Of a stretch of DNA of 64,000 nt, positions 4,739 through 33,536 are shown one piece after another (the first letter of the stretch is position 1; every line of letters begins with the position of its first letter). The stretch lies in NCBI GenBank assembly GCA_001643675.2, contig LSRY02000027.1, positions 1,240,001-1,304,000 on the forward strand. Direction: 5' to 3'. The stretch is from Monocercomonoides exilis PA203 (taxonomy: Eukaryota > Protista > Preaxostyla). Made by a program: the position numbers and the translations under genes. A model generated the notes under the pieces. It did no database searches and was not told where the DNA came from. It saw only the letters and a program-made list of their open reading frames with translations.

Positions 4739-5929
4739 GGGTGATTTTTTTTGACATCATAAAAAAAGATCAAAAATTTAAATAATTAAATTTATAGTGG
4801 TAGTTATTGATCAAAGAGTTTTTTTTTATTCTGATAACAAGAATTGATTTTTCATGAGTATTTAGCATGTATTGATAAAACATTTATTTGTTTAATTTTC
4901 TTAAACAAAAATCCACACTTTTTTTTTATTTTTGGTGAAAAAGGATTTATTGATCAAGTTTTATAAAAACAAACAAAAAACAAATAAATGAAACTTCAAA
5001 AAGGAAAATTGTCATATCATAATTGTAAAAACAAAACTTATAAAGAAAATCTATATTTGTAGAACAAAATGGATGTCTATATATTTGCATAATTTGATTT
5101 TTCGAAAATAAATTCAATGAATTTTTTATTTATTTTGCAGTAACTTTATCAAGTTACTGTCATAGCTGCGCCGTTCAACGACATTATAAAACTATGAACG
5201 AAATAGAAGCGAAACAACAATCGATAAACACAGCAGCTCTAACTTGACATTTCTTTCCTTATTCTTCTTATGAAATGATGCTCTAACTTTCTTCTCCATT
5301 CACCGTCCATCTTTCATCCGTTTCTGCTCTCCTTCATCTAAATCCACCATTTGAAAATGCAACTCATGTTGTCTTCTTTTATCTCCAATATTTTCCTCGT
5401 TAATCTTTCATCACACTTCTGTTCGCCTCTCACGCAAAAAAAGAACTTATTGAGCATTTCCTGCAAATTCGCTTATTTCATTTTCTTTGTTATCTTCTCC
5501 TTTCTACCAGCTCCTTCTTCCTCTACCACACCTTCGTTTCCAGTCTCATCTTTCACAACCTCTGTATATTCCACCTCACTTCTCTCATAAACCCCCTTTC
5601 CCTCGACTCCTTTAACAAGTCCAGCTGTTCCATGAGCAGCGCCATCTTGGAACACAGAAATCAGCAAACTTCCGCAGGCGAACGCTTTCCTTTCGTAAAT
5701 ATCAGCCAGTTCAGTATTATTGAAAAGGTGAATGAAGAACGAAGAAGAAGAAGAAGAGGAGGAAGAGGAAGAAAAAAATGAATTGGAAGGAGGAGAATGA
5801 GAAGAAGAAGAAGAGGAGGAGAGTGAGAAGGAGAAAGAGAAGGAGAAGGAAGAAAAAGCATATTTTGCAAATAAAAATGATAGAAATATTTTAAGCTATT
5901 CATTCTATTGCAAGTTACAAACAGATACG

Positions 5930-7000
5930 TCAATGGAAATGATGTGGAAGAATAAGAAACAGGAAGATCCTTCAATTTTTGAGCTTACAGAAGCATCCTC
6001 TTTCTCAATTTTATCTCAAAATGTTCCGATTCATCAGATTTTGGGAACATTTTCACTTGTCTCCTTTAGAATCTTCGCTTTGAACAAAAAAATTCCAAGT
6101 TATCCTCGAACCTTGATAGACGTTCTTCTGCTTCTTCTATTCATTCATCTTCATTCTTCATTCTTTATCTTTCTTCAAGTGGATCAGCGTGGAGATCTGC
6201 TTCGCCATTCAGGAGGCGAAGAAGCGAAGAGAAAAAGGTGACAGGAGATGATAAGCCATCTTCATCTTCATCATTAGTGCGCGCGATTGACCCTTCGTGT
6301 GAGTCGGTCTTGTCAGCAACACATACGTTAGCAGCAGTAATTGACGATATCGAAAGGCGGCTGAGGTGAATTTTAGTCGCATGCCACTGTCCCTGCTGCT
6401 GCTGTCGCCACGGGTATATGATGTGGTAATTTACAATATGCTGAGAAGGGTTGTTGCGCATCCCTGCGATGTGACGCTTTGGAAATGCTTTCTGTTTTGC
6501 ATGTGGAGCAGATTCTTTCGTTTCCTGCTTCGATGTGAACGAAATTGGAGAGCAAATATCTGTTCTGCAGTGAATGTGAATGAGTTCTTTGAAGTTATAA
6601 TCTGTTTATCCCCTAGCTGCTTCCGACTGCGATGGCGTTGATAGAGTTTTTATTACTGCAATCGATTCTTTTTATAACGAAGATAGACGACGACGTGATT
6701 GGGCAAGGGATTGCACAATCTTATGCAAGGAAGAAGCTGAGGAGAAGGCAATGGAGAAGGTGGGGTTGAGGATGGAGGATGCAGTTCTGAGACCAGCAGC
6801 GATTGATCCGGTAGTTCTTGAGGAGCGAGAAGAGGCAGAAGAAAATAAGGAGGAGAAGATGATGAAAAGGAGGTGAAAGAAGAAGAAGAAGTGGGAAATA
6901 AGAAGAAGAGAAAGAAATGAAGGAGATGAGTCGGAAAATGAAAATGCTGAGAAAGTGAATGGCGTTTCGATAATTTGCTGCTGAATCCTTCTTCAATTTT
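5930..7000 (+). pseudogene. Decayed member of a dispersed hypothetical gene family (paralog at ~41400-43440, minus strand)
   Basis: 6190-6300 matches the reverse complement of 43075-43180 (CCATTCAGGAGGCG.AGAAGCGAAGAGAAAAAGG...GGAGATGATAAG.CATCTTCATC...GCGATTGACCCTTCG); shared YDVV peptide; stops and frameshifts. Confidence 0.5.
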
Positions 7001-8317
7001 TGATATCAGGCAGAAAATCTGAGCAAAGCGTGGTCAGAATCGATACAGGCTTATTCTTCTCTTTTGTTGTTTTCATCTTTTCTTTTGCTCCTCTTTCTTT
7101 CTGAGCCTTTCTAATGTCTTTGTCAAATCCATCTTCTTCTTCCTCTTCTTCTTCCTCTTCTTCTTCATCTTTCTCATTATCTATGCATTTATCTGTCAGA
7201 CACAACGATCCCTTTTCATCTTTATCACTCACAAACTCATTTGCACTCCTCTTCTCATCCTTCTTCTCTCCCTTCCCTTCCTTCCCCTCCTTCTCCTCAC
7301 CCACCCGAATCCCCTGGCTAGCCACATACGCTGCATTGTTCAGAAGGATACTCTGTGGCTCGAATACATCCCTCGTCGCTGACACGCTGCTGCTTGCAAA
7401 CACACCTGCATTATCCAATCTGATCTTCCTAAGAATCACACAAAGGATAGGTTGCGACAAGGAAGAAATAGATGAAGGAGAGGAAGAAGGTAATATGTTC
7501 GATGTGTAATGGGACTTCTGTGTTTGCAAAGAGGAGTCCGCGGTGGGAGATGATGGAGTGAATGGCTTTGGTGGATTTCCCACAACAACAGAAGTGACAA
7601 ACAACTCAGTGCACGTCAATGGAGAAAAAGAAGAAGTAGCAAATGTTGAGGAGGCTGTGGAATTTTGAGTATTCGGACGAGCAGATGAGAGTGCACTATC
7701 GAATAAGCAAAATTTCTGATGACGTTCATTTGTCTTTCCCTTTCTTTGTCCCTCCTCCTCCTTTCTATTGCTGCCTGTTCTTGGATTGTGTCGAAAGAGT
7801 CAATTTGCGATGTGCAAAACTCGTCTTTCTGTTTCGTCTTCGTCTTCGCCTTTGGCTCTTCCTGCTGTCTTCCTTTCCTCTCCTCTGCACTCAATTTGCT
7901 TCTGAAATCCACCTTCTTTGCCTCTTCCATTTGAACTTGAACTTCTCTCTCTTCGCTTCTTGGAAATGTCATAAAGCGAGCTGATGAACGAAATGTGCCT
8001 AACAGCTACTTCTCCCAGCCACTGCCATTTCTCGTGCGATGCCCAATCATATCATTCACGCTGTTCAGCACAGCCGGAGCGCGGAAGCCGTACGAAGTGC
8101 CAACGTGAAGCGGGATGCTCCGCTGCAGAAGAGGAAAGCAGTTCAGATGAACATCAAATAATTCTCCTGTTCGCATTGACAGCGATGACGTTGCTGTCGA
8201 GAGGAAGAAAAGGAAATGACTAATTGATAGTGGGTGTATCAATCTTTTGAAAAACCAGCTTTTATGCATCCGAAGGTGGATGGTCTGCTCCTGCAATATA
8301 ATTGAAGAAATATGTTT

Positions 8318-8866
8318 GAAGAAGAAGAAAAAGAAGATGATGATAATGAGATAAAAGAAGATGAGGAAAAGGTAGAAGAAGAAGAAAAAGAATAGGAAGA
8401 AGAAGAAGAAGAAGAAGAAGAAGAAGAAGAAGAAGAAGAAGAGGAGAAAGAGGAGAAAGAGGAGAAAGAGGAAGAAGAAGAAGAAGAAGAAGAAGAAAAA
8501 GAAGATGATGATAATGAGATAAAAGAAGATGAGGAAAAGGTAGAAGAAGAAGAAAAAGAATAGGAAGAAGAAGAAGAAGAAGAAGAAGAAGAAGAAGAAG
8601 AAGAAGAAGAAGAGGAGAAAGAGGAGAAAGAGGAGAAAGAGGAAGAAGAAGAAGAAGAAGAAGAAGAAAAAGAAGAAAAAGAAGATGATGATAATGAGAT
8701 AAAAGAAGATGAGGAAAAGGTAGAAGAAGAAGAAAAAGAAGAAGAAGAAGAAGAAGAAGAAGAAGAAGAAGAAGAAGAAGAGGAGGAGGAGGAGGAGGAG
8801 GAGAAAGAGGAGAAAGAGGAGGAAGAAGAAGAAGAAGAAGAAGAAGAAGAAGAAGAAGAAGAAGAA
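8318..8866. repeat. (GAA)n microsatellite with a ~170-180-bp higher-order unit (3 copies)
   Basis: Unit AAAAGAAGATGATGATAATGAGATAAAAGAAGATGAGGAAAAGGTAG recurs near 8328, 8497 and 8677, separated by GAA/GAG runs. Confidence 0.9.
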
Positions 8867-11800
8867 GCATCAAAGGAATGTTGAGAAAAAGGTGTTAATC
8901 GTGATTGACTCTGCAATTATGATGACACAAATTACTCAAGCACAATTAACTGAAAAATAACAATAGGGATTAAAGTGGAATGAGGGAAGAGATATAAGAA
9001 CAGTATATGAGAACAAATTACATGTAGAATGCTTATTGAAGATGTTTTGGATAAAGGAGATGCATTGGAATAAACAGAAAATGTTAGCAGGGAGGGAGAG
9101 AAGGAGGAGGAAGGAGAAGACCATTGAACCATAAGTGGCGATATGGCAAATGAAAAAGAGGATAATAAAGCAGAGGATAAAGAAGAAAGTGATGAAGATG
9201 AATGAAAAATTTGTCTTCTTCTTTCCTTCTTTCCTTATTTTTATTTTTCTCATGAAACTTTATCTTTGTTTTCTTCATCTTCTTTTTCCTTCTCCACGTC
9301 ATCTTCCTCAATCATCTCCTCTCCTCTTCTCGAATTTCCAGAATGAAATATCTCTCTTTCTAATAATTCGCACATCTCAATAAATCATGTAGCATCCAAT
9401 GCAGAACCAGCCAACTTTCCAGCGATCAATACAGATCATCTAATTGCAACTGCTCCTTTTTAATTCAAGCAGCCACACTAAATCCGCCTTCTGCGACAAT
9501 CCTCAACCCGAACGAAGCTGGAAAGCACTATTACAAGAGAACAGAGATAAACAAAAAGAGATTTGTGTATAATCAGCAGCAACTGAAAGCATAAAAAGTC
9601 CAGAAACCTCATAATTCACTCTCATCCTTCAATCATACTCAATAAGCAAGAGAGAGCTGTATTGCCTCCAAGAAAATGAGCGTTCTCTGCGTATGTCCTT
9701 CTCAGAAGCATCTCCTTCAACACCTCCCTCATCTTCTCTTTCGTTCGTGAGTACTCATAAACAACTCCAGTTTAATTCCAAGCCTTTGTAGTCTGACAAA
9801 TTTCCCTCAATGACCTATCGGTAATTTCTTCTTTGATGTATTTACCTTCTTCTTCTTCTTCTGGTGCTGCAGCTGTTGCTGCTGTTCATCTGTCTTTATC
9901 CTCTTCACAGAATATCCACTCCTTTCATCTTCCTATTCCTTATCTTCTTCATCTTCTCTGCTTCGGAATCTTCCTTTGCTTCTTCTTCTTTCTCGTCTGG
10001 CACTTCATATCTTCATTTTAATCCTTCTTTTTAACATATATATCCGAATAGGCTAAGATCTTCTTCTTTAATATAAACCTCTTCCTTCTCTTCAACTTCT
10101 TTTTCATTTGACTCCCATCATCTCCAGAGTGTTTCTCCAATTTAATCATATATACACAAATAACCAAATATTTCCAGCTCTCAGCGCTCTTCTCTCTCTG
10201 ACTATCCGCTTTCCTCCACCCCTCATTGTCTCTTCCTGTTCGTCATCTACTCCTTTCTCTTCTTGTCCATTTGGCGATTTCTCAATTTCAAACGAATATT
10301 CTTCTTTAAATTCTGATATTTCAAGAATAAACCCTTCTTTTTTTGAAATTCATCAATTGTTTTAAATAGAATTCTTGTGGCATCAAACAACAATACTGAA
10401 ACTCCGATTTCTTCTTTGCTCATCAAGCAACATTTTCTTCAACAACAAAAACAGCAACACAAAACATACTATTCTCCACTCATTAATTAAAAATTCTCAG
10501 TCAGACTATTCCATTTATTTCTTCTGCTTATCCTTCTCCTCTTCCTCTTCTTTATTTTTCTTCTTTCTTCTTCTTTTTCATCCTCTTCATTTCCCCTGCT
10601 CCTTTCTGCTTTCTTCCACATTTTGTCATTCATCCAGTCATCTTCCCACTCCGCCACTGGCCTTTCGTCGATCACAATATTTTCCATTCAGAAACTTTAA
10701 ACAACAATTGAATAAGCTAAGGCGGAGGATGAAGAAGTGAGCATGTATTTTGAGTGTTGCTCCCTCGTCTCTAATTCCGGATACACTCATTTCTGCATAG
10801 CTTAAACATCCCATCCTAAATAACGAATCCCTCTTTTCACTCGACTTCAACTAATCCTCTCTCTTTCTCTTTCTCTTTCTTTCTCTCTCTCCAAACTCCC
10901 GTTTCTACTGCCTCGATTACTCCCATCCCTGCCTATGCCTCTTCTTCAACCTCTTCTCAATCATCACCTTCGATCGTACTACCCGATTATTCATTAATCA
11001 AAGAAGACGCTCCCCACTTGCCCCCTGCTCCTCCATCTCCACAGCTGTTCTATACATCTGCTGCTCTATCGGAAACACCTTCTGAATCTGCTCCTCCGCC
11101 TCCTTCCATATCCCAACTTCCCTTGCTGGCATCCTAGTCAAGTCCGTCTTGGGGAGTCTGCTCTCCATTAATTTTACCATCTATTCATAGCTATTTCGCT
11201 TCTCATCAGCTGCAACTTTTCCTTCTATTCCTCCTTCGCATCTGTCAACTCTTCCGTCTTCTCCCTCCTCGACGGATCCCTTGCTGCGTCCTCCTCCATC
11301 TTTTCTCAAGCCAACTAGCACACTCACCTCATCCCGATTGGATATTTTGCTCACATGGGAAATCTGCCCCTTTCAGTCTGCTCTTCGAACTTTCAGGAAT
11401 CCAGGCGTTAATCTTTAGCACATCGGCTCTCCGCTTCAAATGCTGTTTCAGCCATGTTTGCATTCGGCTATATCTCCCAGGAGCTTCATTGAATAACTAT
11501 TACGACAGATCTCTCCATAGAAAATGATAGATTTTTCCTTCTTTTTCCTTAAAACCAAATCAATCTGAAAGCTCCTGCAGCATAATAAACTCCATCTTCA
11601 CTTCCATATCGCTCGACCAGCTCGGTAGTTACTTGATCGATTAAAAACTGCAGAAATTCTTCAGTGTATCTCGCCAACTGCACCATTGTTTAAAGGGGGA
11701 CTCCCTCATCCCTTTTGAATACAACTGTGCTCCGCATCGCTATTCAACGGCATTTGAAAAACACTCAATAGATGAAAGAGACCTATCGTCAAAATAAGAT

Positions 11801-13258
11801 ACCATTTTGCTATGTTCTTGTTCACCTGAAAATGTCTTCGAATGGCATATCTCGTTGATTTATTCCTTGAGCAATCCAGCTGCACGAACTTTCCACAACA
11901 GTCAGAGGTGAGGTTATCAAACACTGCAAGATCATCAACAACAACCTCGCCATCCCGAATGTTCCCTCCGCTGGCAGCTTCATCATCTGCCCAAACGCCA
12001 ACTTGCTCTTCATCTCCTTGCTCAAGGAAGTCGACAGTTAGCTCCCCAGCACCTCCACATGAATTCTCAACAGTATATGTGCTCTTCACTGCGACATGTT
12101 CCAGCTCTCTCCCTTCCTCTTCATAGCTGTTCCCTAGCTCGTTCAAGAAAAAGAGGCAACAAATAAAATGGAACCCAAATTAATCTGTGGTTCTCTGTTG
12201 TGAAGAGGAAACCAGAAGAAAAGGAGATTCTAAACCACGATTTTGATGTTGATGAATTATTGTTCAAATCAGACAAAGAAGAAAATCTATCAAAAGGTTT
12301 TATCAGCAACTTTGGAAAGGATTGAGGTGAGCGTATATGTCCTGTTACGGGATTCGGATTGTCCATCTTTAACAAACACTTTATTCCAAAATGAGTCTTC
12401 GCTTTTGCCAAATATCAAAAAATGAAAAATAAAAAATAAAAAATGAAAAATGAAAAATGAAAAATGAAAAATGAAAAATGAAAAATGAAAAATGAAAAAT
12501 GAAAAATGAAAAATGAAAAAACCTTTAAAATAAATGGTGTAAAAGCCATCTTCTTCATTTGCTCTTCTTTAATCTTCAGCACAATTTGAGTTTCTTCGTC
12601 ATCTTGTAAATCTTATTCTATCCAATCGACCCGATCGACATAGGCTTGACATTTTATTCTCATCCTTTTTTCTTTTTGATATCGTTCTTTTTCTTCTCAT
12701 CTTGTTTTTCCAACATCTTCTTCTTCTTCTACAGCTGTTTCATCTTCCGAATAATCAGCCGCTTAATCATCACTTCTTCGTAGTTTTTGTCTTCTTCCAT
12801 CTCGCAAAGGCACTCAGTATCTGTCTTCATATGATCAAAGCGCTTTTTTTTTCCTTCTCCTCCAACAAAAATTCTATTTTCTCACTTTCTTCAGTTGTTC
12901 TTGTCTTCGAATGAAAATGTTCTGCTCCAATTATATTCTGTAGGTGAGTGGCATGTGTTGAAATTTCAGCTTCTTCAGCATTATAAAAGGTGTAACAATT
13001 GAAAGAGATTGCCACTGCTGAACGGGCAGTGCTTCAACAAGCGCATCGCTGTCTGTGGTGAAAATAGGCTGGGACAATAACTGAACTTCTATGTGGTTTA
13101 ATAAATATCAAGAGAAGATATATGTATTTGCAGAAGAAAAAAAGAAGATGTTGAAGCTTTTGAATAAGTAAAACGAGAAGGGACTTTGAAAGAAATTGAA
13201 AAAATTGTTGATGTGGTTTGTGAATGAGGTGAAAGTGAGGAATAGGAAGAAGAAGAAA

Positions 13259-13290
<32 letters not shown>

Positions 13291-13789
13291 GAAAAAGAAG
13301 AATCATGCTTGACGCATTTCTTAAAGTGTGAACTATCTTTCTTTTATTCGGTTGATATTGATAAATTATCTGCATGACTGCCTCTTTTCTTTGCTGCTTC
13401 CGAAAATGACTATCATTTCCTTGTGCTTCTTTTAGCTGTGATGATAAGGCAGCAATCAACAAATTCAAAATGAATGCATTCAAGTTTTCCGAAATTTTCA
13501 CTTTTATTATGGTAACATTTTTGATCCAAAGATGCAGATTCTAAGACGCAAATTTTTTTGTTCGGAACGATTGACTATTATGTAAATAAACTATTAGTAG
13601 CAAAAAAAGCAGGTGTTGGAATCTGTTCTATGATCATGAGTTGATACATTATTTTTTGTTGAATTTAGCTTTGGGGTTTTTTGTTCAAACAAAAAAAATT
13701 TTTATGTTATTGTGAAATTAATAAATGCAATGTAAAACACACTTTTAAATATTTATTTTGCTAGTGAGTACATTTTCACATTTTTGTTT
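8849..13789 (-). repeat. Left arm of ~4.9-kb near-perfect inverted repeat
   Basis: Every ORF here has an opposite-strand twin whose coordinates sum to 39795 (e.g. 13034-13501 / 26294-26761). Identity ends at 13789/26006. One visible substitution (SDYSIYF vs SDYSIHF). Confidence 0.95.
12421..12520. repeat. 7-bp tandem repeat (TGAAAAA)n, about 14 units including variants
   Basis: Read directly; mirrored at ~27275-27374. Confidence 0.9.
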
Positions 13790-13923: not shown

Positions 13924-16010
13924 TTAAAAATAAAGTCTTTTGAAAAATCCAAGTGTTGCATTCCATCCTTCATCACGCATTGCTTGCCAATATGAACTCC
14001 AATTTTCAGCATTGATTCGATGTATTTTGCTATCATCACATTCAAGAAATTGAAAATCATCCAATTTTGCATTCTCATTTTCCAGAACTACAGAAATGAA
14101 GTGACCTTTTTCGTGGATTTCTGTGGAATGAAGAATATATCCGATTAATTTGTAATTAAATGAAGGCTTATCAACGTGCGAAAATGAAGATGGTAAAATG
14201 TTTGTGTTTTCAATTTCAATTGAATTTTGTGTTGATCCAATACCTTTAAATGTCAAGAACAATGAAGGAATAGACAGTGTTTTGGGTTGTGGATTGCTGT
14301 GAAAGATGCACAAGAATTCAGGAAATTTTTCTATTTGAAGCCATCTGTGAATGAATGAAGGACAACGACAATATTCATCCACGCACAATTGAGTGTGACT
14401 TGTAAATGAAGAAGTCAGAACCAACTTTAATCCATTTTCGAGTGTGGAACCATTAATGGTGATAAATGATGATGCTTTCTGATTTTTAATTCGCAAATGT
14501 TTGCAAGATTCACATTGATAGAAAGTTGATAGATGAGGATCAAATTGACGAATAGAAAAAAGATCATCACTATAAACAGTGTGCAATAATACTGCGTCAA
14601 TCACATCCTGAATAACTTTTTCCTCTGTTGGGCTTCCACAGTACTTGGAAATGAAATTGTTCAGCTTTTTCTCGTTCCATTCTTTTTCTGTGACTTCATT
14701 CGCTCGCAGTGCGTCAAACAGCATACCAAACTGTAAACTATATCGTTCCTTTTTGTACGAAACACATTTGACACCAAGAGAAGCAAGGCATTGGCAAACA
14801 CTAGCTAATGCACATGACTTTTGAAAATTAGGCAACTGCCGACCGCTGGAGGAAGAGGCAGAAATGAACGAACGCGAATTCTTACTGCTGATGGACGCAG
14901 ATATTGATGAAGATAGAATTTTTTCGTCCTCGCATCTTTGAATGTGATCCATCACAACCTGTTGTATCATACTGCAATTCGAAAATGTCTATTAAAATGG
15001 AAGTTTTTTTGTATTATGAAAATACGATTCAAAAACATTGAAAATTTTTAATGAAAAAAAACTTTATTTCATACTTCTTTTTCATCAAGTGATTTCTCTT
15101 CCATAATTGATTCCTGTTCATCTTCTTCAATGTCTTCACATGATAAATCATTTCTAATTTGAAAAATAAGGAAAAAACGTTAAAAACAATTCAATTATCG
15201 AAAATCAGAAATAAGAAAAAACCAAAGAAAAATCACACTTCCAAGAAAAGAACGTTTGGTTTAATGTTTTTTCATTAATTGAAATAGTTTCTGATTCATT
15301 TTCTTTTTCATTCCTTTTGAATGAAGGTGTTGAAACGGGAGAAAAAACAGAGATTGGATTTGTAACAATGGTCTGAGGTGCAGATGGGAAATCGTTCGAC
15401 ACGGTAATTGGAGCAGAAACTGATATTGGAGTTGAAATAGAAACAGAAGCAGATGCAGGCAATGGAACTGAAGAAGAGAAGTGATTTGTGGAAGAAAATT
15501 GTGTTGATGCGAAGAACGGCTGTGATATTGTTATTGGAGATGATACGGTTATTGGAGCTGAAACCGTAATTGATGCAGAAGAAGAAGCAGACGATGAAAT
15601 TGAAATAGGAGCAGACACAGACACAGGAGCAGACACAGATACAGGGGTGGGCATAGAAAATTTAATTGCTGATTCGAAACTTGAAGAATGTGAATTTTGT
15701 TGTTGTTTTACATTCAGTTCGTTTGAATCTTTTTGTACAATTAAACAATTTAAAATAAAATTTTAATAAGAAATATTGCTATATATGTTATATAAATAAA
15801 CAAACTTCCTGTATTTTTATTGAAGCGATCCAAGATTACTCGGCCAATTGCATCATTTATAAAAAAGTCGCGTGCAACACGGTCAGCATGTTCTGTAGTC
15901 ATGTTTTCAAAGAATTTGGACAATTTGTAAACGTCTGCCCGAATGCTGCTTTGCCGGAGGCTGCTATGTAATTTTGTGCGCTTATCATTTCTAGTCATAA
16001 ACATACTCAT
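13924..16010 (-). CDS. USP/peptidase C19-like deubiquitinase: N-terminal helical exon, Ser/Pro/Val-rich linker, USP domain; predicted 4 exons
   Basis: Cys box LPNFQKSCALASVCQCL; CESC and CVDEYC Zn pairs; FPEFLCI; His box YKLIGYILH...GHFISVV; FLECDDS. Three GT-AG introns (donors GTTTGT, GTGTGA, GTATGA) join ORFs 15750-16010, 15205-15654, a short acidic exon and 13924-14970 in frame. Confidence 0.8.
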
Positions 16011-17115: not shown

Positions 17116-17151
<36 letters not shown>

Positions 17152-20460: not shown

Positions 20461-21373
20461 ATTTTCCAAGATTGATCATGAAACATTCTTCAGAGTTACT
20501 CGTAGCTCCATTCTAATTCTTGTTTGATTTTTTTCACTTCTTTATGCCAGCAGAAATAATATCATATCTTTGTTAATTGTTTCATCATAAAGAAATAAAT
20601 GTTTGTTTCAACTCTTCATTATTGAACTCAAACACTTTCATTTATTAATTCTTCATCGTTGACAGTGTGTGAATATGAAAATAAAATAATTACAAGTTTC
20701 TTTGTTTTCATTCATATTCAAGTTTAAAAATATCAAAAAAATTCAATAAAGAGTCAAAGCCTTCTTGTTTTAACAGCATTTCTTTATCACAATTGAACAA
20801 ATGAAATATTCAATTTTAAAGGAAGAGTGTCAACACAAATAAGGAACAGGAAATATCTGATAAATGAATATGCAATAACAAACAAAAAACAAAAAATAAA
20901 ACGCTCACTCAATCATGTTAATGTGCTAATATTTTCTTTTATTAATGAATTCCCAAAATATTCAAACAAAATCTTATCGCACAAATAAAAATAATAATCT
21001 AAATAAAAAGATAACAAAAGATAACTTTTATTCTGGGAAGTATTTGATCTCATGGTGCAGAATCTATCACCCAAATATTGATATCATATATGCTTATTTA
21101 TCTTATAAAGATTCCAATGTGAGTCAAAAAAGAGGATGATAGAAACTGCATATGCGGATCAACAATTGACCATTATGAACTTGTTTTTTCAACTTTTGCA
21201 AAAAACAACATGAAAATTTTTGCTTAAATAGATAAATGAAATTATTATTGTTCTGTATTTTTCAATTTTTGCTTTAATTATTTCAAAGAAAATAGAAACT
21301 ATATCTTTTCTGATTCATCTTTTCTCATTCTTTTGATTAAATTAACCATAACAAATATCTTCGATTCTTTTTG

Positions 21374-24300
21374 ATGTCATTTTCCAATCCAAATTCAACA
21401 TTATCATCTCGATGCAGCATTTTATGGAAAGAAATACAACGCATCGGTGGAGATGACGTTGATTCTTTGCTTGCCTATTTGTTTTACAATTATAGGCAAT
21501 CGTCTTCTGTGATTAATGATTTACTGAAATCCTTGAATGGTATAGACTTCAAAATTTTTTGATTGTGAATAACTTATATTAATATTTAATAATATTTATT
21601 TATTAATTTAACTTATTTTTTTGTTATTATGAAAACTTAGAATATTACGAAATACTTCTGAAAGATCTCTCAGTTGTGTACAAGCATGCACAATTGCACA
21701 CGCAAACGATGATCCTACAAGCACTGACGCGCAACGCATCATTATCTGAGCTTCTGGACTATGGATTTGATATCACAGAAGGAAAATATAATTACGCCAA
21801 ACAAACTCTCACAAGAAACCAAGGATTTTTAATTCCAGCACAATTGCCTCACCCACCATCATGCAAAAGTGGTTTGTATAAAATTTTACAATAATTTCTT
21901 TTTTTTCTTCTTTAATATTTATTCATTATTTTTTTATTTTGTTTAGGTCTTAATGAACAAGATTGGGAAAAGGGCAACAATTGGATGTTGGCCCATTCCA
22001 CAGAAGCATCAACGTCATTGCAATCAGCCAAGAAAAAACCAAAAAGGGTTCCTGAATACGCGCAGTTCATAGATGAATCTGCATGGGATGATATAATTAT
22101 TACAGAAAAAAATAATTCAAGCAATGAACAATATTCTCCATCAAAAAAATCTCATCAACAAAATAAAAAATCAAATTCCATGTCAGAAAATAAATCCTCT
22201 TCATCAAAATCTTCTTCATCTCACGTGGTTAGTGATCCAATTAGCACACCACTTAGAGCTGAAAGAAGTTCAACAAAAATCAAACAAAGAAATGCACTTC
22301 ATCATCGTCATTCTTCTCCATCACCTATTCCAATTTATAAACTTTTCAAACAAAAAACTTCCATTTTATCTTCCTCATCTTCCTCTTCCTCTTCCTCTTC
22401 CTCTTCCTCTTCATCCAAAAAGCAACAAAAAGAAACAACAAACACTTCTTCCTTCAGCAACAATGATGTATGGGTTAGTGATCAATTGCTTAATTATGTC
22501 ACTTCTCCAACACTTATTCCTCCACAGGCATATCGAGATTTTCTGTCTTCATTTGCAAAAGACAGCAACACTTCTCTGTCTCCACAAAAAACGCATTCAA
22601 ATGAAAGTGATAATTCAAATCATGAAAGTCATTCGAATATCATTTCAAATAATAACACAATGGATCTTCATCCTTCAAATTGTTCTTTCTCTCCATCGAC
22701 CTCTTCAAGCATCAAAGCCACTGCAATCGCCTCATCAAAAACTCAGAAAGGATTAAAAAACCTTGGAAACACTTGCTATCTTGCCTCTCTCCTTCAATGC
22801 ATATCTTCAATCACTTCACAAAAACAATCAATTATTGAAACCATTTCATTAAAAAACAATTTATCTTCTCGAGTATTGAGTGTTTGTCAACAATTGGCAA
22901 AAGATGGAATGGCAGTGCGTTCATGGTCCCCATCGCTGATCAACAAATGGGAGACATTTTGCGAATACGGAAGCAGGCAACAACAGAATGTGATAGAGTC
23001 ATTTGAAAATCTTCATCAACTTCTGCAAAATGACAAGATAATTAAAAAGGACACCTTCAATCCAGTGCTCATCACTCATTTCAAATGTCAAAAATGTCAA
23101 AAAGTTTCAAATCATTTTAATGAATCTTGTTGCAATGTTATCATAAATTCATCCTCTCCTCAAAAAGGTCTATCTTCTATCTTTTCAACTGAGATATTGA
23201 ACGGAAAAAATGCTGTCTATTGCAACGATTGCAAAGAGAAATGCTGTGCTGCGAGATGGGAGGAAATGGTTGCATTTCCAGAGGTTCTAGCCCTCTGTCA
23301 TGAATGCACTGGCACAACAAGCTCTGCACCTTCAAGAATACTTATGATTGAAACTGATCGTGCCAACAAGCGCACATTTATCAAAGGGTTTATAAACGAA
23401 AAAGAAACTCCGCTTCAATCAAAAAACAAAGAAATAGTAATCTATCATCTTGCTGGACAAATAATCTACAAACGCTTGGATCAGAGCAATGGCCACTTCA
23501 TTGCTGTTGTGAAAAAAAAGAGTGATATTTGCAGTTGTTGGAGAATTTGCAACGATGCTGATGTCAATGATTTTGATAGTGACAATTGGATAAAGTCCTG
23601 GAATAATCTATATGCCCAGGGTTTTACTCCTTGCCTAACATTCTACACAAAAGAAAAAACAAAACCGACATTTTCAACGCTTCAATTTGGTGGTGCTTTT
23701 TCTTCTTCAAAAGCATCGAATATAAACACTTCAAATAACAGATCGTCTTCATCGTTATCATCAACATCACCTTCACCATCCTCATCACCATCCTCATCCT
23801 CATCATCATCATCTCTTTCTTCTTCTTCGTCGTCGTTGTCGTCGTCTGTCACACCACCTCATTGTGCAACTTCCATTCCTCCACTCTCTTCTTCAATTTC
23901 AACAAGTTATGGATTGGAAGCCTTAAAGGAAAGAAGAAAGAAAACGGGCATCTTTTCTCCCAATGAAAAGAGATTAATCTTCAAGCCCAAGACTAAATTA
24001 TGGAAAGAGTTTTCAGAAGAAACGAATATCACAGTTTCTCTTTCCCATTTCTACAAACTCACCACCAATTTCTCCAAAGCGAAAAGACGAACGGATCTCT
24101 GCGGCATGTGTGAGAAGTTGGACTATCTCGAGAACAAACTTAAATCTTCTCAAAACAAAAATGGACTTTCTTCTGCCGAGTTTCACACACTCAAACTTCT
24201 TCGTCAACATCGTCTTGTTGCAGAAATGCAACGAAAACATTATCAATCAACTGTCGACAATCTGAAAGAGGGAGAAGCAGCCTTCGTCTTCGACTTCAAA

Positions 24301-25209
24301 GAAAAATGGAAACTCCCCATCAGAAAGAACCAACTTCAACAAGAATTCTTCAATTATCAACAGGTTTCTCAATTCACAATCATCTCTCTTCAAAAAATAA
24401 ATAATCAACAAATAAAAAGAACTTTCAACTTCTTCTCTGACTGCCTTTCAAATGATCACAGATTTGTTATTGAGTGTCTGGAATCTGTGATCAAAAGGCA
24501 CTTCTTCTCAGACACTCACACTTTTAAGTTCTTCTGCGATTCGGGTCCTCATAACCGAAATCGCTTCCTTCTTCACTTCATCCTTTCAAAACAATCAAAA
24601 CTTCTTAAAAAGAAAAATACTCAACTCAACTTCTTCGCTGAGCATCATGGAAAAAATATATGTGATAGTGAATTTGGTGCGCTAGTGAATGCAATCGACA
24701 ACAATCTTTCGACAGAACACATCACCACACTTCATGACTTGATCAACTTCTTCGAAAACAATATGAACACTTCAACATCAGCTTCTTCAACTTCTCGATC
24801 AAACATTTTCTCAACATCATCATCAAACTCTTCACCATCTTCAACATCTGTCAATAAGTTTGAGCATGAGAGGTTCTTTGAAGAGTACGTACCATCTCAG
24901 CAAATTTCATGGCCATCATTGTCAGTTCCACACATGAAAGATTACTTGTATTTTGAGCGCAAGGGCTCATTTGTCTGTGCTTCAGCTGTTGGATATCTTC
25001 CTCAACGCTCTCTGGTTGCCCTCGAATCTTCGACAATGAAAGAAAAAGTCCAAAGATCAAGAAAGTCATTTCACTCTGATATCACATCATCAAACTCTTC
25101 TCTTCTTTCTCAATCTTCTCAAGATCTTCTTTCAAGGAGATTTGAGCTTCTTCTTGACTCTTCTTCTATTTGTGAATCTCAAAATTGTTCTTTTGGTGTC
25201 CCCTATTAA
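21374..25209 (+). CDS. USP (C19 deubiquitinase)-Sola-like DDD transposase fusion, ~1219 aa; exons 21374-21539, 21641-21871, 21947-25209
   Basis: USP: GLKNLGNTCYLASLLQC (Cys 22774), QQNVIESF, CQKC/CNDC, YHLAGQI..GHFIAVVK (His 23494), WRICND. Transposase: KRRTDLCGMCE..QH, VFDFKEK (D 24292), FFSDCLSND, FFCDSGPH.RN (D 24538), FFAEHHGKNICDSEFG (D 24664). Two phase-1 GT-AG introns give one open frame. Confidence 0.88.
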
Positions 25210-25213
25210 GAAA

Positions 25214-25360
25214 CTAGTTGTTGTGTATGCTTAGCTGGCACTCTATCGGAAGGGTGCTGGACATGACTGTTCGTATAAGATACTACAGCCTTCTGGCTGC
25301 AATATCCGGACCTGGATACGACGAACAGCCTCCCAGGTGCTCAACAGTTAGAATCCGATT
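25214..25360 (+). ncRNA. Putative structured RNA element (multibranch, possible pseudoknot) immediately after the transposase stop
   Basis: Stems 25214-28/25337-51 (14 of 15 pairs, including G-U), 25235-43/25252-60, 25267-74/25321-28, 25286-90/25295-99, 25303-08/25313-18; loop ATCGGA (25245-50) complements TCCGAT (25354-59). Confidence 0.45.
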
Positions 25361-26005
25361 GTTTTCTTGTGCTTTTTGTCCCTATAATGTCCCTATTATT
25401 TAATTGGTTATTGTCCCTATTATTTTTGTATATATTGAGATTCATTAATAGAGAGAGTTGTGAGGGAATTCATTGATCTTTGGGTAAGGTTTTTGGAAGG
25501 GAGAGTTGACGAGAGTGTGAAATGTTGTTTTATCATTGTGTCTGTCTTTTTTCTTTGTTGGATTTGATCTTTTTGAGTCAAAGTGAGAGAAATATCAGAA
25601 AGGGGAGAGTGGATGGAAAACAGAGGGAAAATAGACAAGTTAGTTTTTGAACTTTTTATATAAGTATTCTTTTTTGTTTGGAATTGTCTTTGATACCACG
25701 TATTTGTTGAAATAGTGCTATTTCTTCTTATATTTTTCATTGTTCAAAATTGTTGATATTTAGTTGATATTTGGTGATTGTTTTGAGATTATGTGATAGA
25801 ATTATGTTTTTTTGAAAGTTATTGAATCTGATTTGAAATATTCTAATTGTTTTCTATTTTTTATCAATGATTAATATCGTGAAGTTCTATTTATTTATTT
25901 ATTTATGTAATTTTGATTGGTGAACGATTGATTATTTTTTTCATTTCATCAAAATTTCAATTCACAATAAATATCCAGCTTGTCTTAAATGAAAATTACA
26001 ATTAA

Positions 26006-26504
26006 AAACAAAAATGTGAAAATGTACTCACTAGCAAAATAAATATTTAAAAGTGTGTTTTACATTGCATTTATTAATTTCACAATAACATAAAAATTTT
26101 TTTTGTTTGAACAAAAAACCCCAAAGCTAAATTCAACAAAAAATAATGTATCAACTCATGATCATAGAACAGATTCCAACACCTGCTTTTTTTGCTACTA
26201 ATAGTTTATTTACATAATAGTCAATCGTTCCGAACAAAAAAATTTGCGTCTTAGAATCTGCATCTTTGGATCAAAAATGTTACCATAATAAAAGTGAAAA
26301 TTTCGGAAAACTTGAATGCATTCATTTTGAATTTGTTGATTGCTGCCTTATCATCACAGCTAAAAGAAGCACAAGGAAATGATAGTCATTTTCGGAAGCA
26401 GCAAAGAAAAGAGGCAGTCATGCAGATAATTTATCAATATCAACCGAATAAAAGAAAGATAGTTCACACTTTAAGAAATGCGTCAAGCATGATTCTTCTT
26501 TTTC

Positions 26505-26536
<32 letters not shown>

Positions 26537-29500
26537 TTTCTTCTTCTTCCTATTCCTCACTTTCACCTCATTCACAAACCACATCAACAATTTTTTCAAT
26601 TTCTTTCAAAGTCCCTTCTCGTTTTACTTATTCAAAAGCTTCAACATCTTCTTTTTTTCTTCTGCAAATACATATATCTTCTCTTGATATTTATTAAACC
26701 ACATAGAAGTTCAGTTATTGTCCCAGCCTATTTTCACCACAGACAGCGATGCGCTTGTTGAAGCACTGCCCGTTCAGCAGTGGCAATCTCTTTCAATTGT
26801 TACACCTTTTATAATGCTGAAGAAGCTGAAATTTCAACACATGCCACTCACCTACAGAATATAATTGGAGCAGAACATTTTCATTCGAAGACAAGAACAA
26901 CTGAAGAAAGTGAGAAAATAGAATTTTTGTTGGAGGAGAAGGAAAAAAAAAGCGCTTTGATCATATGAAGACAGATACTGAGTGCCTTTGCGAGATGGAA
27001 GAAGACAAAAACTACGAAGAAGTGATGATTAAGCGGCTGATTATTCGGAAGATGAAACAGCTGTAGAAGAAGAAGAAGATGTTGGAAAAACAAGATGAGA
27101 AGAAAAAGAACGATATCAAAAAGAAAAAAGGATGAGAATAAAATGTCAAGCCTATGTCGATCGGGTCGATTGGATAGAATAAGATTTACAAGATGACGAA
27201 GAAACTCAAATTGTGCTGAAGATTAAAGAAGAGCAAATGAAGAAGATGGCTTTTACACCATTTATTTTAAAGGTTTTTTCATTTTTCATTTTTCATTTTT
27301 CATTTTTCATTTTTCATTTTTCATTTTTCATTTTTCATTTTTCATTTTTCATTTTTTATTTTTTATTTTTCATTTTTTGATATTTGGCAAAAGCGAAGAC
27401 TCATTTTGGAATAAAGTGTTTGTTAAAGATGGACAATCCGAATCCCGTAACAGGACATATACGCTCACCTCAATCCTTTCCAAAGTTGCTGATAAAACCT
27501 TTTGATAGATTTTCTTCTTTGTCTGATTTGAACAATAATTCATCAACATCAAAATCGTGGTTTAGAATCTCCTTTTCTTCTGGTTTCCTCTTCACAACAG
27601 AGAACCACAGATTAATTTGGGTTCCATTTTATTTGTTGCCTCTTTTTCTTGAACGAGCTAGGGAACAGCTATGAAGAGGAAGGGAGAGAGCTGGAACATG
27701 TCGCAGTGAAGAGCACATATACTGTTGAGAATTCATGTGGAGGTGCTGGGGAGCTAACTGTCGACTTCCTTGAGCAAGGAGATGAAGAGCAAGTTGGCGT
27801 TTGGGCAGATGATGAAGCTGCCAGCGGAGGGAACATTCGGGATGGCGAGGTTGTTGTTGATGATCTTGCAGTGTTTGATAACCTCACCTCTGACTGTTGT
27901 GGAAAGTTCGTGCAGCTGGATTGCTCAAGGAATAAATCAACGAGATATGCCATTCGAAGACATTTTCAGGTGAACAAGAACATAGCAAAATGGTATCTTA
28001 TTTTGACGATAGGTCTCTTTCATCTATTGAGTGTTTTTCAAATGCCGTTGAATAGCGATGCGGAGCACAGTTGTATTCAAAAGGGATGAGGGAGTCCCCC
28101 TTTAAACAATGGTGCAGTTGGCGAGATACACTGAAGAATTTCTGCAGTTTTTAATCGATCAAGTAACTACCGAGCTGGTCGAGCGATATGGAAGTGAAGA
28201 TGGAGTTTATTATGCTGCAGGAGCTTTCAGATTGATTTGGTTTTAAGGAAAAAGAAGGAAAAATCTATCATTTTCTATGGAGAGATCTGTCGTAATAGTT
28301 ATTCAATGAAGCTCCTGGGAGATATAGCCGAATGCAAACATGGCTGAAACAGCATTTGAAGCGGAGAGCCGATGTGCTAAAGATTAACGCCTGGATTCCT
28401 GAAAGTTCGAAGAGCAGACTGAAAGGGGCAGATTTCCCATGTGAGCAAAATATCCAATCGGGATGAGGTGAGTGTGCTAGTTGGCTTGAGAAAAGATGGA
28501 GGAGGACGCAGCAAGGGATCCGTCGAGGAGGGAGAAGACGGAAGAGTTGACAGATGCGAAGGAGGAATAGAAGGAAAAGTTGCAGCTGATGAGAAGCGAA
28601 ATAGCTATGAATAGATGGTAAAATTAATGGAGAGCAGACTCCCCAAGACGGACTTGACTAGGATGCCAGCAAGGGAAGTTGGGATATGGAAGGAGGCGGA
28701 GGAGCAGATTCAGAAGGTGTTTCCGATAGAGCAGCAGATGTATAGAACAGCTGTGGAGATGGAGGAGCAGGGGGCAAGTGGGGAGCGTCTTCTTTGATTA
28801 ATGAATAATCGGGTAGTACGATCGAAGGTGATGATTGAGAAGAGGTTGAAGAAGAGGCATAGGCAGGGATGGGAGTAATCGAGGCAGTAGAAACGGGAGT
28901 TTGGAGAGAGAGAAAGAAAGAGAAAGAGAAAGAGAGAGGATTAGTTGAAGTCGAGTGAAAAGAGGGATTCGTTATTTAGGATGGGATGTTTAAGCTATGC
29001 AGAAATGAGTGTATCCGGAATTAGAGACGAGGGAGCAACACTCAAAATACATGCTCACTTCTTCATCCTCCGCCTTAGCTTATTCAATTGTTGTTTAAAG
29101 TTTCTGAATGGAAAATATTGTGATCGACGAAAGGCCAGTGGCGGAGTGGGAAGATGACTGGATGAATGACAAAATGTGGAAGAAAGCAGAAAGGAGCAGG
29201 GGAAATGAAGAGGATGAAAAAGAAGAAGAAAGAAGAAAAATAAAGAAGAGGAAGAGGAGAAGGATAAGCAGAAGAAATGAATGGAATAGTCTGACTGAGA
29301 ATTTTTAATTAATGAGTGGAGAATAGTATGTTTTGTGTTGCTGTTTTTGTTGTTGAAGAAAATGTTGCTTGATGAGCAAAGAAGAAATCGGAGTTTCAGT
29401 ATTGTTGTTTGATGCCACAAGAATTCTATTTAAAACAATTGATGAATTTCAAAAAAAGAAGGGTTTATTCTTGAAATATCAGAATTTAAAGAAGAATATT

Positions 29501-30946
29501 CGTTTGAAATTGAGAAATCGCCAAATGGACAAGAAGAGAAAGGAGTAGATGACGAACAGGAAGAGACAATGAGGGGTGGAGGAAAGCGGATAGTCAGAGA
29601 GAGAAGAGCGCTGAGAGCTGGAAATATTTGGTTATTTGTGTATATATGATTAAATTGGAGAAACACTCTGGAGATGATGGGAGTCAAATGAAAAAGAAGT
29701 TGAAGAGAAGGAAGAGGTTTATATTAAAGAAGAAGATCTTAGCCTATTCGGATATATATGTTAAAAAGAAGGATTAAAATGAAGATATGAAGTGCCAGAC
29801 GAGAAAGAAGAAGAAGCAAAGGAAGATTCCGAAGCAGAGAAGATGAAGAAGATAAGGAATAGGAAGATGAAAGGAGTGGATATTCTGTGAAGAGGATAAA
29901 GACAGATGAACAGCAGCAACAGCTGCAGCACCAGAAGAAGAAGAAGAAGGTAAATACATCAAAGAAGAAATTACCGATAGGTCATTGAGGGAAATTTGTC
30001 AGACTACAAAGGCTTGGAATTAAACTGGAGTTGTTTATGAGTACTCACGAACGAAAGAGAAGATGAGGGAGGTGTTGAAGGAGATGCTTCTGAGAAGGAC
30101 ATACGCAGAGAACGCTCATTTTCTTGGAGGCAATACAGCTCTCTCTTGCTTATTGAGTATGATTGAAGGATGAGAGTGAATTATGAGGTTTCTGGACTTT
30201 TTATGCTTTCAGTTGCTGCTGATTATACACAAATCTCTTTTTGTTTATCTCTGTTCTCTTGTAATAGTGCTTTCCAGCTTCGTTCGGGTTGAGGATTGTC
30301 GCAGAAGGCGGATTTAGTGTGGCTGCTTGAATTAAAAAGGAGCAGTTGCAATTAGATGATCTGTATTGATCGCTGGAAAGTTGGCTGGTTCTGCATTGGA
30401 TGCTACATGATTTATTGAGATGTGCGAATTATTAGAAAGAGAGATATTTCATTCTGGAAATTCGAGAAGAGGAGAGGAGATGATTGAGGAAGATGACGTG
30501 GAGAAGGAAAAAGAAGATGAAGAAAACAAAGATAAAGTTTCATGAGAAAAATAAAAATAAGGAAAGAAGGAAAGAAGAAGACAAATTTTTCATTCATCTT
30601 CATCACTTTCTTCTTTATCCTCTGCTTTATTATCCTCTTTTTCATTTGCCATATCGCCACTTATGGTTCAATGGTCTTCTCCTTCCTCCTCCTTCTCTCC
30701 CTCCCTGCTAACATTTTCTGTTTATTCCAATGCATCTCCTTTATCCAAAACATCTTCAATAAGCATTCTACATGTAATTTGTTCTCATATACTGTTCTTA
30801 TATCTCTTCCCTCATTCCACTTTAATCCCTATTGTTATTTTTCAGTTAATTGTGCTTGAGTAATTTGTGTCATCATAATTGCAGAGTCAATCACGATTAA
30901 CACCTTTTTCTCAACATTCCTTTGATGCTTCTTCTTCTTCTTCTTC
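26006..30946 (+). repeat. Right arm of ~4.9-kb near-perfect inverted repeat (decayed gene content; similarity fades into a CTT array to ~31140)
   Basis: Reverse complement of 8849-13789. Confidence 0.95.
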
Positions 30947-33536
30947 CTCTTCTTCCACTTCCTCTTCTTCTTCTTCTTCATCTTTCTCCTCTTTCTCCTC
31001 TTTCTCCTCTTCTTCTTCTTCTTCTTCTTCTTCTTCTTCTTCTTCTTCTTCTTCTTCCTATTCCTTTTCTTCTTCTTCTACCTTTTCCTCATCTTCTTTT
31101 ATCTCATTATCATCATCTTCTTTTTCTTCTTCTTCTTCTTTTTCTTCCTCTTCTCCTCCTCCTCCTCCTCCTTCTTCTTCTTCTTCAAATGGAAAGTTTT
31201 CCTCTTCATTTTCTTTTTCATTATCTTTTCCTTGTTCTCCTTCTTTTTCTTCCATCCTCTTCTTCCCTCTCCCTCAACATTCCACATTCTTTTATCTTTT
31301 TCCTCTACGCTCTTTCCTCTACCTCTGTGACTTTCTTCGCATTCAGCTGGTCTTTGATGGCTTGTTCGAAAATGATCTTTTCCTGCATAGCCCTCATCTT
31401 TGTTGTTTCAAACTATTTTTCTTTCTTATTCCTCAGCTGCTCTGCCTCGTATGCTGCTTCTCGCTCCTGAAGAGAGAAGAGAGAGAGAGTCGACGGCAGA
31501 AAAGCGAAAGGAGAAAGATGCACAGGAGGAGGACGATGTGAAGAAGAAGAAAAAGTGAAATTGCTCAGAAGATTGAGAAGCACTACGTTACAAATTGCAA
31601 TGACGAGATCTATGGAAATGAGATGCTCGACAGAGTCACTGGAGTCAGCATTGAACACAAAGATGGGAGAGGCAACGCCGAGTGTGGATAGTTTGATGTG
31701 GGAGAGTTTGAAGAATAAAGCGGGGAGAACGCAGAAGCAAGAAGCTGAGGTTGACATAAAAATGGTGGAAAAATAGAGGGAGGAGTGCACATCGAGAAAT
31801 AATTCAAAACGGTATAAGAACGAGGAACAGGTTGATTAAAACAATAGATGTTAGGAGATAGCAGTTAATGAATATGCAATCGTTGAGAAACACAGTAATA
31901 GCAAGAAAATGTTGACAAAAGGATCTCAAACAAGAATTGCAGGGACAAAATAGACTTCAGGTGGAAGCCTAATGGTGGAAAGGTTTTAGAAAGAGGAATC
32001 GTTGGAGGATGAAGAGTGAGAAGAAGTGGAGAAGATTGGATACGATGAAGAAGCTGAAACAGAAGAAGTCGGAATCTCTGATGGGGGTTTTGTGGAGAGA
32101 GAGCGTTGAGTGAAATCGAGTGAAAAAAGAAATTCGTTGATTTTGAAGCGAATCCTGGAAAACTAGAGAAAGACATATTTGCTGACAAAAGCATCACTCA
32201 AGGCGAAGCGGTGGTTGAGGATAGAGAAAGAGGAATGGAAGGAACATTTGCAAGTTTGGAGCAATCGAGACAAACAGTCGCAATTTCTTGTTGTTAAGGC
32301 ACACAATTGCAGCTTCAATTGCGTCAGAATAGTAGACTGCAAATCCTCTATCAGCATTCACACGGGCATTGGCCCGTTGTATGTGTATTTAACGTTGTGG
32401 ATGTTAGCATTGTCCAGAGCGATGGCTGTTCTGGGGTGTGTGACAAGTTAAAACGAAGCAGCGGAGCTAGCCAAAGCAAATGAGCAGAAGGCAACGAGTG
32501 CAGTGACAGAATTCATAGAGAACTGGAGAGAGAGGGATGAGAGTGTTGAGGAAGTGGATGGAGCAGTTATCTGGAGAAAGTGTAGCGAAAAGAAAACAGT
32601 GATGTTTATGCAGTGATAAAGAGATGTATGCCTTTTTGATGAGTCAGCTGTAGTTTGAGCAGTTTTCGTAAGCAGATTATATCTCGAAAAATAGCAGCCT
32701 GCAAAACCAGGCAACTTAGGAGACAGATATCAGGATAAAGGATGAGAGACGAGGAAGAAAAAAGGAGAATAAAAGAAGCACAGATGATTTAAAGATGAGA
32801 AAGATGAAACGAGGATATCCGTGCTGTTGAAGCCATAAAAGAAAAAAAAAGTAGAAATTTTTGAATTTCATTTTATTTATTCATTATTTCATTGCATTTT
32901 TTTTAACTTTGTTTTATCAATTTATTTAAATGACTTTTTTAAAGTATTATTTATTTCCAAGCTAATGTCAACTACAAATTGTTGAATATCTGATAAATAT
33001 CTTGTTATGCTATCATATTTTTCTATCTGTGTTAATGTGAATTGTTAAATTTCAACGAATATTTTATGATCTTCTATTTCAATTTTAAAATTTCTTTGCA
33101 ATAACATCATAAAATTTATATTTACATAAAAAATAAATTTATTGAGTGTTATTAATTATTGTTTTCATGTTATATTAGCGATTAAGCAAGTATCTTGTTC
33201 GATTTATTTTAGTTTCGATATTTTCAAAAATTTTTTAATGTTTTTTTTCAAATTTTGTAATAAAAGCTATAAAAATCAAGTTAAAATCAACATATAAATA
33301 ATAGTTATTATTAATTAAACTTTAATTTCATGTTATTTCAAATAAAAATTTTCTTATTAACTCCAACCTTAATGAAAATTTTTTATGATCAAACGTCGAA
33401 ATTTTTTATGATATCAAAAAAAATCACCCATGTTCAAATTGTCACATTTTCATCTGCTTTGGCTTCATCTATTGTTTCTTTGAGATTTTGTCAACAAGTT
33501 CATAAAGTTTTTTATTTTTTATTTTTTTTTTCATTT

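Follow-up and report, generated by a model that had tools for sequence, protein, structure and literature searches.

Structure of the locus

The window analysed here is a 64,000-nucleotide stretch of the mitochondrion-less protist Monocercomonoides exilis PA203 (assembly GCA_001643675.2, contig LSRY02000027.1, positions 1,240,001 to 1,304,000 of the forward strand), and plain coordinates below refer to positions within it. Its positions 4739-33429 hold a 28,691-bp element that is bounded by 28-bp terminal inverted repeats (TIRs), carries two genes with a ubiquitin-specific protease (USP) domain, one of them joined in frame to a transposase, and is very probably one copy of an autonomous cut-and-paste DNA transposon. 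The left TIR (4739-4766, plus strand) reads GGGTGATTTTTTTTGACATCATAAAAAA and is followed by ~200 bp of conserved subterminal sequence, and the right TIR (33402-33429, minus strand) is its counterpart and differs only at position 17 (T instead of C), so that the two ends are identical at 27 of 28 positions. Each end adjoins a copy of a 4-bp target-site duplication (TSD), ATGT, at 4735-4738 on the left and 33430-33433 on the right. Repeats, span and flanking ATGT are all as a first-pass annotation of the sequence had described them.

These two TIRs are the only matches to the 28-bp end in the window when up to three mismatches are allowed (none expected, from 100 shuffles). Searches of 4739-33429 with the 28-bp end, a 12-mer and the subterminal motifs of the two end types, A on the left and B on the right, found no further end, and nested elements of the same family were rejected on this ground.

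The insertion site is preserved empty in paralogs

To rebuild the empty site, we joined 200 bp of left flank (up to 4738) to 200 bp of right flank (from 33434), keeping a single ATGT, and obtained paralogs of the flanking repeat by a whole-genome search with the 400 bp left of the element (n=8). Seven of them (L002-L008) align unbroken across the rebuilt junction, each with a single 4-bp site, and in all of these except L003 the junction reads ATGTTCAAAT. Paralog L002 (C16:243117-246508) encodes an intact 530-amino-acid DDE_3/Tc1-type transposase and is apparently an intact element, indicating that the interrupted host repeat is a Tc1-like element. The insertion point lies in the 3' part of the Tc1-like transposase gene, where the target ATGT was duplicated. 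Since the unbroken paralogs carry one ATGT, the 28,691 bp represent one insertion with a 4-bp duplication.

The first-pass annotation had taken the interval for one mobile unit. In line with this, Tc1-like paralogs continue from 4738 into 33434, the TSDs match, and neither end has a nearer partner within the interval. The seven empty-site paralogs, together with the matching TSD and the complementary A- and B-type ends, support a single mobile unit.

An abundant family with two kinds of ends

The nanopore-based assembly comprises 82.3 Mb in 101 contigs; repeats account for 46% of it, unclassified repeats for 35% of the genome, and expanded gene families are suspected (PMC8767320). The 28-bp end has 407 matches in this genome (at most two mismatches), from which 20 neighbouring plus/minus pairs with perfect ends were fetched. 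The ends proved asymmetric: an A and a B kind share the same 28-bp repeat and each have ~200 bp of conserved subterminal sequence, the A end continuing beyond the repeat as ...AAAAAAAGAT and the B end as ...AAAAAATT. All 19 pairs that combine an A with a B end are flanked by identical 4-bp TSDs and have termini reading GGG...CCC. The duplicated sites (ATAT, 11 times; ATTT, three times; AAAT and AATT, twice each; ATGT and AGAT, once each) show that the family targets A-N-N-T, mostly ATAT. The sole B/B pair (C18b) has flanks that do not match and serves as an internal control.

The 19 A/B pairs measure 4.5, 5.3, 5.5, 5.7, 5.9, 6.0, 6.7, 6.9, 12.0, 12.8, 17.0, 19.5, 19.8, 21.1, 22.0, 22.2, 24.8, 28.7 and 35.0 kb. 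Nine of them, all of 17-35 kb, enclose a transposase copy; among the fetched elements the fusion gene was found only in those of at least 17 kb, and coordinates place a copy inside two further large pairs. Thus, autonomous members are large as a rule, and the 28.7-kb copy is not the largest. The description of this copy as a giant carrier has accordingly become a description of the family: all 19 A/B pairs tested have matching TSDs, and large size is the norm.

The transposase domain has at least 97 scored genomic copies with 83-97% amino-acid identity (477 first-look candidates), most of them in open frames of more than 1000 amino acids. Among the 42 copies listed on contigs C1-C32, 29 have a perfect, correctly oriented family end within 30 kb, usually at 8-14 kb, which is far above chance given the density of perfect ends on these contigs; both perfect ends are present in nine.

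A deubiquitinase fused to a DDD transposase

The conserved autonomous core of the element (21374-25940, plus strand) consists of an upstream region, the fusion open reading frame (ORF; 21985-25209) and ~730 bp of conserved 3' sequence. As the first-pass annotation had it, the ORF is intact; it encodes 1074 amino acids, with a USP deubiquitinase upstream of a transposase with a triad of aspartates (DDD). Residues 256-535 (22750-23589, plus strand) match the Pfam family UCH with 49.8 bits (cut-off 23.9) and contain the conserved Cys box, NLGNTCY, and His box, GHF...CND; the motifs NLGNTCY and GH[YF]...CND are kept in all six fusions compared.

The transposase domain, encoded by 23902-25206 (plus strand) and corresponding to the last 435 residues, has 619 relatives among 1.8 billion representative proteins, the named ones from the oxymonads Blattamonas and Streblomastix and the dictyostelid Heterostelium. 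In an alignment of 48 homologs, D131, D213 and D255 of the domain (fusion residues 770, 852 and 894) are invariant, as are H249-G250-K251, an HGK motif, and a DxCxxC motif (D65, C67 and C70). The AlphaFold model (predicted local distance difference test score, 84.7) has an RNase-H-like fold: over residues 110-325 it matches retroviral integrase cores, Mos1, Metnase and IstA with Z of 9.5-10.8, and its top Foldseek matches are IstA, Hermes and Mos1. The transposase query matched no Pfam family. The nearest labelled clusters belong, weakly, to DUF7869 (PF25273), to which five of the 48 homologs have a weak match and of which we found no mention in the literature. None of the 47 aligned transposase homologs, including one other M. 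exilis model (P0002), carries a UCH domain, and the fusion is therefore specific to this M. exilis lineage within the sample. An exact-protein look-up of the fusion returned no gene record.

Selection was assessed by pairwise ratios of nonsynonymous to synonymous substitutions (dN/dS) among six full-length, stop-free fusion ORFs from different loci (W, C1a, C1b, C18a, C8a and C7b). The ratio is 0.19 in the USP domain and 0.05 in the transposase domain, compared with 0.45 in the low-complexity N-terminus and 0.31 in the inter-domain linker. Judging from these ratios, both halves of the fusion are under purifying selection. In the same six ORFs, synonymous divergence of the transposase domain (0.38) is about half that of the USP domain (0.82), a difference that may reflect recombination or gene conversion among copies, or additional constraint acting on the 3' half. 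The ~730 bp past the fusion stop (25210-25940) lie in a block that is ~92-93% identical to C1a and C1b; identity of the 5' half of the fusion coding region to the same two copies is 74-76%, below that of the 3' block.

A second USP gene accompanies the fusion

A stand-alone USP (peptidase C19) gene of 348 amino acids lies at 13924-14970 on the minus strand. Its ORF is intact, matches Pfam UCH with 37.3 bits (cut-off 23.9) and keeps the catalytic Cys, His and Asp positions. At least 11 other elements have a relative (34-37% identity, open frame of 360-540 amino acids) next to the fusion gene, in most cases in divergent orientation and with its end ~3 kb upstream of the USP domain of the fusion. 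In its place, some elements have a 1000-1400-amino-acid ORF with a USP-like part beside the A end, e.g., L040:618-4754. Both the intact divergent USP gene and the deubiquitinase module that the first-pass annotation had assigned to the element thus recur in the family, the fusion being intact in six elements and a stand-alone USP gene lying near it in at least 11 others.

A USP-like stretch with 32% identity to the stand-alone USP was also found at G000:C80:1108777-1109706, within a 5,878-amino-acid open frame that has one TGA inside the match. This frame possibly represents a giant gene of the host that is related to the USP genes of the elements.

Independent reads agree with unique interior parts

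Read contigs were compared over 6,000 bases (20100-26099), a stretch that is contained in four DNA runs of the same sample. Short-read contigs from these independent runs are identical to the assembly in unique parts of 20255-23402. The transposase domain has a summed contig depth roughly a hundred or more times that of the unique parts, in agreement with a high copy number.

Over 22646-25781, two further runs (X5 and X6), one of another organism and one a 2025 gut metagenome, yielded short contigs 92-100% identical to USP and transposase parts. These contigs suggest that close relatives of the element exist outside the sequenced strain.

An inverted duplication brackets the two-gene core

A 5,148-bp inverted duplication, with a left arm at 8642-13789 (plus strand) and a right arm at 26006-31153 (minus strand), brackets a 12.2-kb segment containing the two genes with a USP domain. 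The arms are 99% complementary, with 99.5% identity (0.5% divergence), consistent with the first-pass report of an inverted duplication of ~5 kb. The outer breakpoint of the left arm falls in a (GAA)n array (8318-8867) and that of the right arm in a (CTT)n array (30928-31186). As a unit, the 5.1 kb occur in the genome only as these two copies; short pieces match elsewhere at 68-95%, so that the arm is a mosaic of pieces resembling other loci and other elements, and relatives of the arm ORFs are few, with several located within other elements of the family. We rejected the arms as copies of another transposon, given that only these short pieces are found elsewhere.

A comparable arrangement is present in a 17-kb element on C12 (L022/L023, C12:173462-190481), where a 597-bp inverted repeat (98.8%), unrelated to the 5.1-kb arms, brackets the fusion gene and the core has an inverted orientation with respect to the A and B ends. 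Core-flanking inverted duplications thus recur and can flip the core.

We infer that the private 5.1-kb duplication around the core with its two genes arose recently, by a rearrangement of this copy. As the duplication may post-date the insertion, the size at transposition could have been ~23.5 kb, i.e., without one arm, and the element might have arrived at this size or less and grown in place, so that 28.7 kb never moved as a unit. The near-identity of arms that are private to this copy, their outer breakpoints in GAA/CTT microsatellites, where local rearrangements typically occur, and the lack of a sibling with the same configuration all speak for growth in place. However, members of 21-35 kb with perfect ends and matching TSDs indicate that size is no barrier to movement, the C12 element suggests that family members carry inverted repeats around their cores, and nothing dates the duplication relative to the insertion. 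On balance, we consider growth in place less likely than not.

Near-identical inverted repeats can also be assembly errors, and in a nanopore-based assembly (PMC8767320) the duplication or other internal joins could be artefacts; the read-contig comparison reaches only ~94 bases past the boundary at 26006, with no bridging contig among the pieces listed. But fold-back artefacts normally lack a long unique spacer, whereas 12.2 kb of unique sequence with genes lie between these arms, whose outer flanks differ, and the short-read contigs agree exactly with unique interior parts. An artefact is accordingly improbable.

Cargo is shared and exchanged between elements

Comparison of seven transposase-carrying elements showed that the only blocks common to all of them are a core of ~5-6 kb (21374-25940 in this copy) and the terminal 0.5-1 kb on the B side; outside these blocks the elements differ. 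In the present copy, the B-side block corresponds to the B-end subterminal region (32844-33401), which is conserved and common to most family members. Further blocks are shared by some of the elements. C1b and C7b have 13 contiguous kb in common at 89-96%, including ~9.5 kb of cargo up to the B end, and C1a and C7b share their left 11 kb; C7b, which matches C1a on the left and C1b toward the B end, is thus a mosaic of both. Such common blocks between loci indicate that cargo is copied to new loci with the core and exchanged between elements.

The A-end module (4767-8230, minus strand) is typical of non-autonomous members and is common to the small elements C1c, C8b, C9, C7a and C32. A search with it gave 1268 first-look candidates, and several copies align from base 1 beside the end through ~3.4 kb at 74-80%. 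It contains an orphan coding region in two adjoining frames (7972-6993, minus strand), whose protein has matches only in M. exilis, annotated as MONOS_* hypothetical proteins. A ~3-kb repeat at 17140-20405 (442 first-look candidates, 72-84% identity) frequently precedes the fusion gene by a few kb elsewhere in the family, occurs in opposite orientation in C1a and C7b, and also stands alone on contig C30. It was considered as a nested inverted-repeat transposon and rejected, as it has no terminal repeats, Pfam matches or protein relatives.

The first-pass annotation had also labelled parts of the interior as host-like gene fragments, a label that could not be established. Pfam scans of ~40 cargo ORFs from five elements found no convincing domain, only a sub-threshold Anoctamin match and a hint of CFAP65-Ig, so that host derivation of the cargo cannot be confirmed; most of it is family-specific or orphan sequence. 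An origin of the cargo as fragments of the giant receptor-kinase genes is not supported for this element: apart from cargo in other elements, the arm ORFs match just one small family, located on C29.

The distribution of these blocks bears on whether the fusion gene drives the family or is a passenger in elements whose 28-bp ends are moved by another enzyme. The gene lies 8-17 kb from either end, and small members exist without it, as a passenger would allow. But its core is the only block common to all large members, the association of listed copies with a perfect family end (29 of 42) far exceeds chance, the DDD core is intact and under strong purifying selection, and Pfam scans of the ORFs of the elements found no other transposase or integrase domain; a passenger role is therefore very improbable, and we take the fusion gene to encode the transposase of the family. 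Least credible of all is a chance pairing of ends from different neighbouring elements, or a nest of elements of the same family, which the abundance of the family (~400 ends) and the one tested pair formed by two B ends of different elements (C18b) might suggest, but which is virtually eliminated by the seven host-repeat paralogs running uninterrupted across the rebuilt site with one ATGT, the pairing of one A with one B end, and an interior devoid of further end motifs.

Other transposon sequences in the window

The first-pass annotation had noted that the end subtype of the element differs from that of a nearby miniature inverted-repeat transposable element (MITE), and this is the case. The 257-bp MITE at 50401-50657 has GGGTGATTATTT-type ends and an AAAT duplication, i.e., it is the same kind of element with a different end subtype. 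From 47711 onward, a degenerate A-type end (GGATGATTTTTTT...AAAAAAGATC) opens a second, more divergent element, whose ORFs have no Pfam matches. Outside the element there are also an 823-bp inverted repeat (37164-37986 and 38094-38916; 100% complementary, 107-bp spacer) and an ORF at 39664-40647 with a DDE_1 (pogo-type) transposase domain, which represents a further transposon family in the window.

Relation to known transposons

Sola2 elements, described by Bao, Jurka and Kapitonov in 2009, reportedly combine a DDD transposase of RNase-H-like fold with 4-bp TSDs, GRG...CYC termini and MITE-like or other non-autonomous members; described Sola elements are reportedly a few kb long. The M. exilis element resembles them in the DDD triad on an RNase-H-like fold, the 4-bp TSD and the GGG...CCC ends, and its family likewise includes MITE-like and other non-autonomous members. 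These traits fit a Sola-like family, not a proven member of Sola, as the comparison is with described features of Sola and not with its reference proteins; the first-pass assignment to the Sola type stands to that extent. Pfam contains no Sola model (PMC5751038), and curated Sola1 elements of bivalves average 5.4 kb (PMC10294476). In contrast, transposase-carrying members in M. exilis reach 17-35 kb, and they differ further in the in-frame USP domain, the second USP gene and the variable, inherited cargo. A piggyBac identity was rejected, as the targets are ATAT, ATTT, AAAT, AATT, ATGT and AGAT instead of TTAA and there is no DDE_Tnp_1_7 match.

Plant Pack-MULEs and gene-capturing CACTA/EnSpm elements are cut-and-paste transposons with variable interiors of foreign or rearranged sequence, form mosaics and, in the case of CACTA, extend to tens of kb. 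The M. exilis elements share with them conserved ends around a variable interior that is copied to new loci, as well as mosaic structures. They differ in transposase superfamily and TSD length, and their autonomous copies carry 10-25 kb of cargo.

With regard to the deubiquitinase, the closest parallel is found in subgroups of the Helitron-like HLE2 elements, which stably carry a UCH or OTU domain, sometimes in frame with the transposition protein (PMC11417382). In both cases a ubiquitin-hydrolase domain is kept at a fixed position in a transposon lineage. However, HLE2 elements are rolling-circle elements with a Rep-helicase and neither TIRs nor TSDs, whereas the partner in M. exilis is a DDD cut-and-paste transposase accompanied by TIRs and a 4-bp TSD. 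A Helitron-like identity was rejected on account of these TIRs and the TSD, and no Helitron or PIF1 domain is present in any ORF scanned. Zisupton, KI-MULEs and some CACTA elements carry Ulp1 (C48) SUMO-protease domains, and Ulp1 also occurs in MULE elements. Here too, a cysteine protease of a ubiquitin-like-modifier system is linked to a DDE/D transposon, but the superfamilies are different and the protease in M. exilis is a C19 USP, not a C48 SUMO protease.

Very large units that move whole between defined ends are also known. Teratorn of medaka is a piggyBac element fused with a herpesvirus, whose genome makes up the bulk of its ~180 kb, and Mavericks and Starships have integrases or tyrosine recombinases and conserved structural genes. 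The M. exilis elements are similar in being large units between defined ends; general Pfam scans of their ORFs showed no genes of the Teratorn, Maverick or Starship type. Our literature search found no description of M. exilis transposons beyond bulk repeat counts and no publication on this family, in agreement with the first-pass statement that no described equivalent was known to its author. The family is thus undescribed, as well as abundant.

Interpretation

Taken together, the evidence supports the original observation as real and its interpretation as essentially right: the element is a very large autonomous Sola-like member with a USP-transposase fusion, a second USP gene and heritable cargo. 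Several points weigh against this interpretation. Transposition and USP activity are predicted from sequence. No sibling has the particular cargo of the 28.7-kb element, and movement of this exact configuration is deduced from a single insertion and the behaviour of the family; moreover, the inverted duplication is not datable relative to that insertion. Kinship with Sola is based on described features and not on reference transposase sequences. The assembly is nanopore-based, the read contigs are too short for long-range continuity across the arms, and a run search found no RNA run containing the stretch.

In the model that we propose, the transposase would bind the A and B ends, excise the whole interval and reinsert it at a cut staggered by 4 bp. 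Whatever lies between the ends would move too, so that elements of 4.5-35 kb coexist. Cargo could turn over when, in the repair of an excision gap, family members recombine or the template is switched between them. The USP domain and the separate USP gene would serve the element itself, most probably by deubiquitinating the transposase, or else chromatin or repair factors at the sites that the element leaves or enters.

Cut-and-paste transposons of the DDD/DDE class are usually a few kb long. In contrast to this, the 82-Mb genome of M. exilis harbours about a hundred or more autonomous members of 17-35 kb. Genes of such elements, e.g., the orphan ORF at the A end, are currently annotated as host hypothetical proteins. 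The inherited and recombined cargo blocks offer a mechanism for the spreading and shuffling of sequence families in M. exilis, and an in-frame deubiquitinase that is kept by selection suggests that transposition is connected with the ubiquitin system. A bolder reading, which we put forward only tentatively and regard as rather unlikely, is that of a self-sufficient ubiquitin-editing transposon, in which the USP is needed for transposition or for escape from host control and repair-coupled cargo exchange makes these 17-35-kb elements a main engine behind the unclassified repeats that form 35% of the genome. If true, this would be the first cut-and-paste superfamily known that couples a deubiquitinase to its transposase, with tens of kb of heritable, shuffled cargo as the rule.

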